A stretch of DNA of 64,000 nt, taken from sequence record NC_031927.1; one strand, given 5' to 3'. The notes beneath the pieces were generated by a model. It ran no database searches, was not told where the DNA came from, and saw nothing but the letters and a program-made list of their open reading frames with translations. The translations under genes were made by a program, and so were the position numbers. Every line of letters starts with the position of its first letter. The stretch's first letter is position 1. Of the stretch, positions 8,795 through 60,045 are shown piece after piece.

Positions 8795-8977
8795 TCTACA
8801 AAAACTAAGTGGTGGAGCCAACTTATAGTTGACCCTTATGCCCTTGTCGGATGGGCTTTATAAATGCCGACTGGCGCGTCGTAGCAAAGGTTTCTCACTC
8901 TTCCTTAAAGAGTGAGTGGTGCGGATGATTTCATCGCATGGTTTTGCGATTCCATTTAAAGATCGTATGGCGAGCAT
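8795..8977 (+). ncRNA. Structured non-coding RNA, manA-motif-like
   Basis: ORF-free region with several stems (CTCACTCTT/AAGAGTGAG; GCGGATG/CATCGC; GCGAT/ATCGT; ATGG/CCAT pseudoknot-like pairing), followed by a terminator. Family assignment is from memory of the cyanophage manA RNA. Confidence 0.55.
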
Positions 8978-9004
8978 GTTAATATACCCAATCATTTTTT
9001 GATG

Positions 9005-58099: not shown

Positions 58100-58119
58100 A
58101 ACTTTATTTTGTAATTATC

Positions 58120-58743
58120 ATGGCAGAAGCGACAACCAAAAAGACACGCACAAGGAAGCCTTCCGCTTCCAAAGTAACTACTACAGCTAAAAAGAAAGCT
58201 CCAGTATCACTAGAGCTTCCTAGAAATCCTCTTATGTTTGAGATTCTAGACCTAGTTTCCAAGCAGCGTACTAAGGCTAAGAAAGTAGAAGCACTCAAAA
58301 AGCACGAGTGCCTAACTCTCAAGTCCTTATTCATTTGGAACTTTGATGAGACTGTAGTCAGCCAACTCCCAGAAGGTGATGTGCCTTATGGTGACCCCGA
58401 AGACCAGTTGAAGTATAACGGAACTCTATCCGAGAACCTAGCAGATAAGTCTCGTCAAATGTATACTGACGGTAACTTCTCATTAGGTAGTGCTGATACT
58501 AACGGCAGAACAACTCTCCGTGCTCAGACTCGTAACTTCTATCACTTCGTTCAAGGTGGTAATCCAGGTCTCTCTGGTATGCGTCGTGAGTCTATGTTTA
58601 TCAACCTCCTTCAATCGGTTCACCCCCTTGAAGCAGAGATTATGGTCCTCGTAAAAGACGGACTGCTCTCTGACTCATACGCAATCACCCAAGAGGTAGT
58701 TGCTGAGGCATATCCCGATATCGTTTGGGGAGGAAGGGGTTGA
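58120..58743 (+). CDS. Conserved T4-like cyanophage hypothetical protein
   Basis: EILDLVSKQRTKAKKVEAL...RRESMFINLLQSVHPLEAE. Confidence 0.8.
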   Translation: MAEATTKKTRTRKPSASKVTTTAKKKAPVSLELPRNPLMFEILDLVSKQRTKAKKVEALKKHECLTLKSLFIWNFDETVVSQLPEGDVPYGDPEDQLKYNGTLSENLADKSRQMYTDGNFSLGSADTNGRTTLRAQTRNFYHFVQGGNPGLSGMRRESMFINLLQSVHPLEAEIMVLVKDGLLSDSYAITQEVVAEAYPDIVWGGRG

Positions 58744-58828
58744 TTTTCTCCACCCAAAATCTTCCATAAACATTAAGAAAATATAAAGCTCCCTAAATAA
58801 ATCTAGGGAGTATGTTATACTCTTTATA

Positions 58829-58933
58829 CGTTCATCACACAGAAGGCTGTGTGACGCAAGTAGGATGACGCGGAACGGATTTCGTTCATTTTGCACAAGA
58901 GTGTGAAACGCAAACGCCACCCGAAAGGAACGG
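58829..58933 (+). ncRNA. Tandem glutamine-riboswitch-like aptamers (Downstream-peptide/glnA family)
   Basis: Two units, each CGTTCA-hairpin-ACGCAA...GGAACG, directly upstream of a YRGV.Y peptide gene. Confidence 0.65.
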
Positions 58934-58966
58934 GATTTAACCATCTCATTTCTTAGGAGCAAACAA

Positions 58967-59101
58967 ATGCTAGCAGTATATCGTGGTGTCGCTTATGACA
59001 CAGATCGTAACTTAACGAAAGAAGCAGATTACAAAAAAGTAACTGAAACTTATCGTGGTATTCAGCACACCGAAACCGTTAAGGTAGAGGTATCAAAATG
59101 A
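58967..59101 (+). CDS. DUF4278-like peptide (44 aa)
   Basis: MLAVYRGVAY...TYRGIQH; AGGAG RBS; absent from the track. Confidence 0.75.
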   Translation: MLAVYRGVAYDTDRNLTKEADYKKVTETYRGIQHTETVKVEVSK

Positions 59102-59202
59102 ATACACTAGACATCATCCGTCAAAAAGAGCTAAAAGCAAGAAAGCTTCACGAAGCTCGGTTGCTTATGGCAAGACTAAATCAAAGAGCGAATAACGCTT
59201 GA
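59098..59202 (+). CDS. Small basic helical peptide (34 aa), GS-inactivating-factor-like
   Basis: ATGA coupling; MNTLDIIRQKELKARKLHEARLLMARLNQRANNA. Confidence 0.6.
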   Translation: MNTLDIIRQKELKARKLHEARLLMARLNQRANNA

Positions 59203-59206
59203 TACT

Positions 59207-59233
59207 AGGAGCCGCAAGGCTCCTTTTTTTTTT
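59207..59233 (+). terminator. Rho-independent terminator
   Basis: AGGAGCC-GCAA-GGCTCCT plus long T-tract. Confidence 0.9.
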
Positions 59234-59269
59234 ATGCTATAATATATATTATGTTATATTATTAAGTTT

Positions 59270-59800
59270 ATGGACTATAGTAATAATTTAATATTTGATC
59301 TTGAAAATGATCACTTAGAAAAAGTGACTAATTTTTATGATAAAATACTTTCTGATTCTGAAAATCTTAAAAATATATTTGAAGATGATGATTATATCGA
59401 AGAGAATTGTGGGTGGGAAAAAATTGAGAGTGTAGAACAACTCAAAAAGCATCATATTGGTTGTATAAAAGAACAATCAATGTTTAGTGAGGAAGAACTC
59501 ATTGATGAAGATTTTCAAGCTATGACTAATAATGACCTTTTAAGTGGGATCATGGAGATGTGTGATGGATATTCTACATCACCTACATTAATTTTTAATA
59601 AACAAACCTCCACTGCTCGCTCCGTTCCTGATTCTTCCACCAAAGATAATATAATTTTTTATACTACAGATGATATTTTAGATTATCTTAGAGAGAAATG
59701 TAAGACACATCATGTGATTTGGTATTGTATAAATCTTTTATACTCCAAAGGCTACAAAGGTAAATTCAAAATCCGCATTCACTCCTTTGAAAGACAATAA
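59270..59800 (+). CDS. AT-rich hypothetical protein
   Basis: Has its own TATGCTATAAT promoter (59233). Confidence 0.7.
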   Translation: MDYSNNLIFDLENDHLEKVTNFYDKILSDSENLKNIFEDDDYIEENCGWEKIESVEQLKKHHIGCIKEQSMFSEEELIDEDFQAMTNNDLLSGIMEMCDGYSTSPTLIFNKQTSTARSVPDSSTKDNIIFYTTDDILDYLREKCKTHHVIWYCINLLYSKGYKGKFKIRIHSFERQ

Positions 59801-59853
59801 AAAATTTTCATAGTTCTCTTTTTATGCTATAATACCCTTGAATACATAATACT

Positions 59854-60045
59854 ATGGACCGAGACAAGGTAAAGTTCTTAATTCAATCAATTGAAGTTCT
59901 TATTGAAGAACTAAAAGCAGAGGTTTACACCGACTCCGAGACCCATAAGGTTTCTGAGACTGCTTATAGCGACGAGGAGGAACCAATTTCCACCGATGAT
60001 CTAATCCAAACAATGTTCAACCAAGTGATTGACGATACACTATGA
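59854..60045 (+). CDS. Conserved hypothetical protein
   Basis: TATGCTATAAT at 59823; ATGA overlap with thyX. Confidence 0.75.
   Translation: MDRDKVKFLIQSIEVLIEELKAEVYTDSETHKVSETAYSDEEEPISTDDLIQTMFNQVIDDTL

Follow-up and report, generated by a model that had tools for sequence, protein, structure and literature searches.

The 64,000-nucleotide (nt) stretch of sequence record NC_031927.1 analysed here (the window) belongs to Synechococcus phage S-CAM7, a T4-like cyanomyovirus of the Kyanoviridae (Mazuvirus; NC_031927, 100% identical over 58100-59900), and carries at 58829-58959 the leader of a small two-peptide operon. Judged by its sequence, this leader is a sub-threshold member of the glutamine riboswitch class. 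The explanation that best covers the locus as a whole, and which we regard as probable, is a nested glutamine-sensing leader acting as an ON switch for two cooperating peptides. The further proposition, that the leader is one interlocked two-site sensor with coupled sensing and that an open reading frame (ORF) of its inner hairpin couples sensing and translation in most cyanomyoviruses, stands at about an even chance. A first-pass annotation of the same DNA had proposed a glutamine-riboswitch-type RNA of two units ahead of a two-peptide operon, each unit closing a P1 of its own, with peptides directed at glutamine synthetase (GS). It was right on the RNA class, as borne out by the Rfam family match and the retention of the pocket nucleotides, and on the operon; its fold is probably wrong, and the target it gave to the peptides is unsupported. 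The sequence features it listed were all recovered, at most a few bases from where it had placed them.

In crystal structures of glutamine riboswitches the nucleotides contacting glutamine are C1-C5, the CGC groove strand with its base triple, and GGAACG-G; a tertiary pair, the linchpin, joins the third nucleotide of the groove strand (ls) with the nucleotide after GGAACG (+1), and is C:G in glutamine-II and G:C in glutamine-I (PMC6698751). Each of the corresponding stretches (CGUUC, a CGN groove strand immediately 3' of the hairpin, and GGAACG) occurs twice in S-CAM7, and none of them varies among 39 relatives. The elements of the leader are as follows, in 5' to 3' order, with lengths of stems in base pairs (bp):

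58829-58833 (plus strand): 5' strand 1, CGUUC, invariant in all relatives; proposed partner GAACG at 58928-58932, giving the outer P1 as assigned from linchpin covariation
58835-58854 (plus strand): hairpin 1, TCACACAG/CTGTGTGA, 8 bp with an AAGG loop, supported by covariation
58855-58862 (plus strand): groove strand 1, CGC, and the AAGUA joiner, which fit the Rfam glutamine consensus; C58857 is the proposed linchpin partner of G58933
58863-58870 (plus strand): P2a, GGAUGACG, the 5' strand of a shared P2, predicted from RNAalifold and covariation to pair with 58915-58922
58872-58878 (plus strand): 3' strand 1, GGAACG (58872-58877), with G58878; predicted to pair with CGUUC 58883-58887 as the inner hairpin, G58878 being the putative linchpin partner of C58911
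58883-58887 (plus strand): 5' strand 2, CGUUC, predicted to close the inner helix over a 4-nt loop (58879-58882)
58889-58908 (plus strand): hairpin 2, TTTTGCAC/GTGTGAAA, 8 bp including G-U pairs, with an AAGA loop, supported by covariation
58909-58922 (plus strand): groove strand 2, CGC, then AAA and P2b, CGCCACCC (58915-58922), supported by P2 covariation
58923-58933 (plus strand): GAAA joiner, 3' strand 2, GGAACG (58927-58932), and G58933, the putative switching strand, fitting the consensus GAAGGAACG
58932-58959 (plus strand): expression platform from minimum-energy folds, with the hairpin GGGAU/AUCUC (58932-58936/58943-58947), a UUUCUU anti-strand (58949-58954) and the Shine-Dalgarno sequence AGGAG (58955-58959)

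The two internal hairpins both covary among relatives: hairpin 1 shows two-sided changes at seven of its eight pairs across 10 sequences (covariation score 0.41, as against 0.12 in shuffles), and hairpin 2, for which relatives display ten different stems, covaries at all four counted pairs of an alignment of compact tandems described below. With permissive Rfam settings, RF01739 (Glutamine-I) matches unit 1 at 26.3 bits (E=0.0016), which upholds the family assignment that the first-pass annotation had wished to see checked in Rfam, although the gathering cut-off of 35 is not reached; RF01704 (Glutamine-II) matches unit 2 weakly, at 12.3 bits against a cut-off of 33. At gathering thresholds, a wcaG RNA at 8886-8981 is the sole Rfam match in the 64-kb window. 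The homologous leaders score 27-39 bits against the Rfam glutamine family, and a single one (L012) exceeds the threshold, at 39.3 bits; there the model aligns the 5' half of unit 1 with the 3' strand of unit 2 and places a 49-nt insertion in P2. A covariance model of aptamer 1 recovers unit 2 at E=9e-4 and nothing further in the window, and the stability of the single-sequence fold of the leader is not significantly above that of shuffles (z = -1.7). Several of these themes are already in print: glutamine riboswitches are frequently tandem (PMC2864571), with 157 doublets in a 2022 survey (PMC9481103), they usually lie upstream of DUF4278 genes and act as ON switches in both classes (PMC6212724), and they are present in T4-like cyanophages (PMC9964418).

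The principal evidence for a nested topology comes from related phage tandems, collected by four pattern scans of a viral contig collection and counted as distinct parsed tandems. Their linchpin nucleotides, given as ls and +1 for unit 1 and then for unit 2, fall into these combinations:

CGC,G then CGC,G: 52 distinct tandems
CGG,C then CGG,C: 68 distinct tandems
CGG,G then CGC,C: 13 distinct tandems
CGC,C then CGG,G: 28 distinct tandems
CGC,C then CGA,G: 3 distinct tandems

The tandems whose units differ are the informative ones. Were the two units classical neighbours, each with its own P1 (58829-58833/58873-58877 and 58883-58887/58928-58932), each binding glutamine independently and only unit 2 touching the ribosome site, then the linchpins should match within each unit. 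Instead, both cis linchpins are mismatched in all 44 distinct heterotypic phage tandems, and the swapped linchpins are both Watson-Crick in 41 of them, the other three having one swapped pair as A-C. The opposite, cis-consistent mixed types that a side-by-side model permits were not encountered among the parsed phage tandems of the four scans; further, a loose pattern for such a type, with +1 of unit 1 as G and ls2 as CGG, hit at least 117 loci, and among the matches listed not one could be parsed as a tandem, as fits the nested model. A scan that selected on unit 1 only (CGC with +1 = C) returned unit 2 partner positions that were G (27) or A (3) and never the otherwise commonest C.

The same pattern is seen in a MAFFT alignment of 39 distinct compact tandems (A10), in which the outer nested linchpin (columns 29:114) is Watson-Crick in 39/39 (CG 32, GC 7) and the inner nested linchpin (columns 51:92) in 30/30 (CG 20, GC 10), against 36.7% and 35.9% pairing for the cis linchpins. 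The linchpin flips have taken place on at least four different P2 backgrounds, in compact and ORF-containing forms alike. Additionally, the stretch after AAGUA (joining region 1) is antiparallel to the stretch before GAA-GGAACG (joining region 2), and across 46 distinct combinations of the two joining regions 74% of cells are Watson-Crick in register, compared with 11-29% in shifted registers. Compensatory changes are observed at three pairs of this shared P2 (A10), and matched variants include AGUCG:CGACU, AGUCA:UGACU, GGACGACG:CGCCGCCC, the GGAUGACG:CGCCACCC of S-CAM7, AGCCGACA:UGCCGACU, and a co-shortened GGACGG:CCGCCC. Run on the S-CAM7-like alignment, RNAalifold predicts both the shared P2 and the inner hairpin without prompting. 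Neither cyanophage joining region folds on itself, so that a closed P2 hairpin inside each aptamer was not found. In terms of folding energies, the inner hairpin (first GAACG with second CGUUC) is part of the minimum-energy fold of all 11 homologous leaders, and nearest-neighbour calculations place the nested P1 set 3.5-4.6 kcal/mol above the cis set in stability in eight of nine leaders.

These relatives, in which linchpins and shared P2 covary only in the nested, strand-swapped arrangement, contradict the proposal that each CGTTC pairs with the GGAACG of its own unit. A side-by-side reading does draw on some features: the best Rfam alignment of S-CAM7 is that of cis unit 1, the aptamer-1 model also recognizes unit 2, the cis and nested nearest-neighbour energies of S-CAM7 are equal (-34.9 vs -34.6), and bacterial tandems of the SAR116/SAR86 type, together with similar phage ones, have local P2 hairpins and could plausibly be adjacent. 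The SAR116/SAR86 bacterial-type tandems examined further have homotypic linchpins and are probably true neighbours. For the cyanophage type, however, the cis mismatches, the mutual pairing of the joining regions and the cost of the cis fold leave independent neighbours a very unlikely description.

According to the nested model, the first CGUUC (58829-58833) would pair with the last GAACG (58928-58932) as an outer P1, enclosing in turn hairpin 1, CGC-AAGUA, P2a, the inner helix (58873-58877 with 58883-58887), hairpin 2, CGC-AAA, P2b and GAAA. The joining regions 58863-58870 and 58915-58922 would form the shared P2, with a three-way junction at either end, each with its own hairpin, CGC groove strand and C-G linchpin. 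The outer junction would have the glutamine-I joiners AAGUA and GAAAG, and the inner junction would be its circular permutation.

Several considerations weigh against this model. The S-CAM7 aptamers lie below the Rfam gathering score, and S-CAM7 has C-G at all four linchpin positions, making its own sequence uninformative on topology, such that the nested fold is carried over to it from the homologous leaders. The P1 strands are invariant, and their partners are deduced from the linchpins and crystal geometry rather than from P1 covariation. The informative tandems are related phage sequences, one of the scans having selected on two of the four columns, and thus represent fewer independent events than their counts suggest. 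At two of its positions the 8-bp P2 has A-C or C-A in every case and never a standard pair. Further, the loop-E joiners of glutamine-I are missing from the inner junction, whose closing loop is only 3-5 nt long and which may not bind ligand; in-vitro work, as cited in PMC5066625, has tandem glutamine aptamers binding without cooperativity.

Those features of the inner junction lead to a second alternative, in which only the outer glutamine-I junction binds glutamine, and the inner hairpin, together with hairpin 2 and its CGC, has no ligand site and either caps an extended P2 structurally or is left over from a duplication. The absence of AAGUA/GAAG joiners and the very short closing loop are as such a reading would have them, the inner part is treated as a P2 insertion by the Rfam model, and the whole ORF lodged in hairpin 2 of most cyanomyoviruses (see below) would hamper a stable inner site. 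Yet the inner linchpin flips between C-G and G-C with no mismatch among the 30 tandems scored above, which points to selection on a tertiary pair stacked under the ligand pocket, and the inner CGUUC, CGC and GGAACG vary no more than their outer counterparts in the 39 relatives. A single functional aptamer is hence distinctly unlikely.

As to switching, the minimum-energy folds of all 11 homologous leaders contain a sequestering helix in which the last GGAACG strand lies outside P1 and AAGGAA (58925-58930) pairs with UUUCUU (58949-58954); in the same folds C58921-58922 pair with the first two G (G58956-58957) of the Shine-Dalgarno AGGAG. The small hairpin between the sequestering strands takes the forms GGGAU/AUCUC, GGUUU/AAACC and GGGGUU/AACCUU among relatives, with pairing kept. 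When the nested P1 helices are enforced, the two Shine-Dalgarno G are freed in five of nine leaders, S-CAM7 included. It may be envisaged that, without glutamine, the last GGAACG strand and the base of P2 would pair with UUUCUU and the first two Shine-Dalgarno G, keeping translation off, and that bound glutamine would stabilize the outer P1, releasing the ribosome site and switching translation on; a pre-formed inner site would pre-organize P2. On the strength of this release in the enforced folds, taken with the published ON behaviour of these RNAs (PMC6212724), we infer glutamine-activated translation. ON switching has been shown experimentally for the gifB leader and for a Prochlorococcus DUF4278 leader.

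In most cyanomyovirus leaders, hairpin 2 encloses a whole ORF of 49-66 amino acids (aa) belonging to gene cluster T4-GC_430; instances are S-MbCM6 (L021:936-1200), three further leaders (L022, L023, L024) and 49 distinct tandems of viral contigs (e.g., L151, L154, L184, L502). Of these 49 distinct long tandems, 45 have the AUG 3-5 nt past the second CGUUCA and also the stop exactly 4 nt before the last GGAACG. Because of this stop position, the last codons, W-D-A-N/H/K-D, coincide with the CGC strand and P2b of the aptamer, and where the linchpin is flipped to CGG the protein encoded in hairpin 2 ends in WDGND rather than WDAND. The Shine-Dalgarno GGAG of this ORF overlaps the first GGAACG-G, and therefore folding of the inner aptamer should hide it, which suggests an opposite control of two small proteins by inner aptamer folding.

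The S-CAM7 leader is followed by two micro-ORFs:

58967-59101 (plus strand): peptide 1, 44 aa with two YRG motifs, DUF4278-like (RefSeq gp200; Pfam, phrog and homologues)
59098-59202 (plus strand): peptide 2, 34 aa, a predicted basic helix whose start overlaps the stop of peptide 1 (ATGA), supported by its coding signature and homology

The first-pass annotation had described both, together with the AGGAG ribosome site, but held them to be absent from the ORF track; this is only partly so, the 44-aa ORF being annotated in RefSeq and the 34-aa ORF only in isolate MT586120. The likeness of peptide 1 to DUF4278 that it had noted is upheld just under the cut-off: peptide 1 scores 23.1 bits (E=1e-4) against Pfam PF14105, whose gathering cut-off is 25.3, over profile positions 1-34 of 57, and authentic riboswitch-linked cyanobacterial DUF4278 members score 41-77 bits. 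Peptide 1 also matches phrog_5049 (E=1.7e-14), and a word search yields 15 homologues of 73-98% identity; both YRG motifs are invariant in 11 homologues, and codon differences are biased to the third position. A small YRG protein 3' of a glutamine aptamer is also found in cyanobacteria, and a protein-pattern scan of genome contigs gave no host relatives of peptide 1, its patterns probably being too specific.

The reading frame of peptide 2 is open in 11 of 11 distinct relatives, with an ATGA or GTGA overlap, and the other two frames contain 1-5 stops. Differences are concentrated at third codon positions, and synonymous codon differences number 322 in frame as compared with 60 and 78 in the shifted frames; on this codon signal, peptide 2 is a real coding sequence. 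It matches phrog_545 in its first half only, the second half being matched by peptide 1. This phrog is a 54-55 aa cyanophage protein consisting of a helix followed by two YRG motifs, and is very abundant in marine data (164 clusters). By profile-profile comparison, too, peptide 2 is a homologue of the helix with which the fused 54-aa proteins begin (hhalign 97.3%, E=2e-11), and DSL-LC03 has the split form with an identical ATGA overlap. The fusion of the two in most other cyanomyoviruses, alongside coupled pairs elsewhere, makes it most likely that they work jointly.

For the target of the peptides, host nitrogen metabolism is our leading guess. A more specific proposal, implied by the 'IF-like' label of the first-pass annotation, is that they are GS inactivating factors (IFs), a split IF17 with which the phage would shut down host GS at high glutamine. 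IF17 has DUF4278 as its N-terminal domain, glutamine riboswitches of cyanobacteria usually carry DUF4278 genes as cargo (PMC6212724), and peptide 2 is a short helix rich in arginine and lysine. Further, the riboswitch-linked genes from cyanobacterial genomes that served as the test set comprise full IF17 (DUF4278 plus IF7-like), IF7-like-only and DUF4278-only forms. Three of the cyanobacterial genome loci (L030, L055, L080) have a glutamine-I riboswitch directly 5' of 51-55 aa IF7-like proteins without DUF4278, such that the riboswitch is linked to each half of IF17 separately, besides the fusion.

At the level of homology, however, an IF7-like nature of peptide 2 was rejected: hhalign gave a probability of 0.25% against seven IF7-like regions and 0.38% against a second C-terminal class. 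The arginine-rich IF7-like C-terminal region that is needed for GS binding was not found, peptide 1 stopping after its DUF4278-like part. Pfam, NCBIfam, a PDB profile search and the ESM Atlas offered no lead for peptide 2 (the best Atlas score, 0.76, is not meaningful), and no solved GS-IF complex came up as a match. Moreover, IF17 is reported to inactivate GS without needing its DUF4278 part, and marine picocyanobacterial GS is reported to be apparently not regulated by inactivating factors, co-evolution having been left open (PMC6316151). A split IF17 is consequently an unlikely identity for the pair.

The operon lies next to a DUF6433 gene (58120-58743) on one side and a hypothetical gene followed by thyX on the other, and a search of RefSeq NC_031927 found the leader locus once, with an additional chance-level match of 13 bits at 122962-123013. 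Its transcription signals are:

58813-58821 (plus strand): extended -10 promoter element, TG-n-TATACT, read from the sequence; predicted start 7-8 nt downstream, at about 58828-58829
59207-59234 (plus strand): intrinsic terminator from a terminator scan, a 7-bp GC-rich stem (59207-59224) followed by a T10 run

A strict sigma-70 scan reports no promoter in S-CAM7, nor is there a good -35 element; the promoter is called from the extended -10 and from relatives, which have TTGACT, 17 nt, TATAAT and then 7-8 nt to CGTTCA. As this is a promoter of the host sigma-70 type, the cassette is taken to be an early gene. The terminator, also among the features first noted, stands 3' of peptide 2 in all relatives, with differing stems. 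Taken together, 58813-59234 would constitute a self-contained cassette of promoter, glutamine-sensing leader of about 105 nt, two translationally coupled micro-ORFs and terminator. In 17 marine metagenome loci, fetched via nine of the 15 peptide 1 homologues, the order is kept wherever the flank suffices: DUF6433 gene, two CGTTC...GGAACG units, peptide 1, ATGA/GTGA-overlapped peptide 2 and terminator. This recurrence, with the covariation of the hairpins, marks the features as more than a chance occurrence. Marine metatranscriptome assemblies contain contigs of close relatives that are confined to the cassette, the longest being 382 nt (58833-59215), though such contigs are no proof of transcript ends and DNA may be present in RNA libraries.

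Several smaller elements were observed around the cassette and elsewhere in the window. A 9-bp hairpin (CTCCCTAAA...TAGGGAG) at 58789-58810, between the DUF6433 gene and the promoter, is flagged by the scan as terminator-like on the minus strand and may insulate the cassette from upstream transcription. The -10 hexamer of relatives is often flanked by a short inverted repeat (e.g., L155, L156, L164, L176), the arms of which differ between phages with complementarity kept (GGTC/GACC, GTGG/CCAC, GGGT/ACCC; in S-CAM7 GAGTAT/ATACTC, at 58810-58824) and measure 4-7 bp in 15 of 51 cases; the repeat could form a hairpin in the RNA of read-through transcripts or work at the level of the DNA. Two relatives that carry the same element, L010 (1270-1305) and L015, have an extra 6-bp GAAA-tetraloop hairpin, AGUUCG GAAA CGGACU, between the -10 and the first CGUUCA. 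An NCBI metagenome contig (L013:1-460) lacks the first half of the leader, which there begins at the first GGAACG and is joined to unrelated upstream DNA with an HK-family gene; this is either a chimeric assembly or a rearrangement. The wcaG RNA at 8886-8981 is full-length (RF01761, 77.1 bits, cut-off 42), and is a known cyanophage cis-regulatory motif.

A nested, strand-exchanged architecture kept by covariation would, if true, represent a novel design of two-site riboswitch and the natural, covalently linked counterpart of a domain-swapped dimer so far known only from crystals. It would also account in structural terms for the tandem arrangement, described in the literature as unexplained, and would make a coupled, switch-like sensing of host glutamine possible. 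With the start and last codons of the hairpin 2 ORF embedded in the aptamer, sensing and the translation of two small proteins would be physically coupled, possibly oppositely. T4-like cyanophages appear to read host glutamine early in infection in deciding on production of a micro-protein pair that is fused in most cyanomyoviruses and abundant in marine metagenomes. For annotation, the implication is that standard models miss or mis-segment such elements: S-CAM7 falls under the Rfam cut-off and some matches span both units.

Among known systems, the closest is glutamine-I (the glnA RNA, RF01739, as in the Synechocystis gifB leader), which shares the CGUUC/GAACG P1, the internal hairpin, the CGN groove strand, the AAGUA and GAAG joiners and the linchpin. 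The gifB leader further shares the translational ON switch, predicted here, and a DUF4278 cargo. S-CAM7 differs in that its P2 would arise from two joining regions pairing with each other, with a circularly permuted junction as its cap, instead of being a closed hairpin, and in its groove strand, CGC with a G linchpin, which is glutamine-II-like; its score is under the Rfam cut-off. On the protein side, IF17 (gifB) and the 'IF17-like' DUF4278 proteins of marine picocyanobacteria share with peptide 1 the two YRG motifs, a DUF4278 match (sub-threshold in peptide 1) and the riboswitch linkage. Unlike IF17, peptide 1 has only 44 aa and no IF7-like C-terminal region, and it comes with a coupled helical partner, which profile comparison shows to be unrelated to IF7; in most cyanomyoviruses the two are fused, in reverse order.

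Published tandems (PMC9481103; Ames and Breaker 2011 as cited) likewise have two aptamer-like units a few nt apart, serving one gene with no terminator between them. Such glutamine tandems have been viewed as independent or pseudo-cooperative neighbours of which the benefit is not known (PMC5066625). The SAR-type tandems examined fit that picture, whereas in the cyanophage type the linchpins are swapped and P2 is shared. No description of a nested or strand-exchanged glutamine riboswitch tandem was found in the literature searched, which did not cover Ames and Breaker 2011, and the words 'nested' and 'interleaved' are absent from the tandem-riboswitch survey. The strand exchange itself has a parallel in the domain-swapped glutamine-II crystal dimer (PDB 6QN3) and the two-piece form, where the 5' half of one unit and the GGAACG strand of another make up a ligand site. 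Separate glutamine-II pieces associate in a ligand-dependent manner in vitro (PMC6698751), and the dimer has been considered a crystallization artefact, presumably absent in vivo (PMC7357161). The exchange is intermolecular in that dimer, whereas in S-CAM7 it would be intramolecular, sequence-encoded and under selection. Finally, the tandem glycine riboswitch resembles the S-CAM7 leader in combining two homologous aptamers for one amino acid with a single expression platform and inter-aptamer contacts; its domains lie side by side and dock by tertiary contacts, whereas those of the S-CAM7 type would exchange strands and share one helix.

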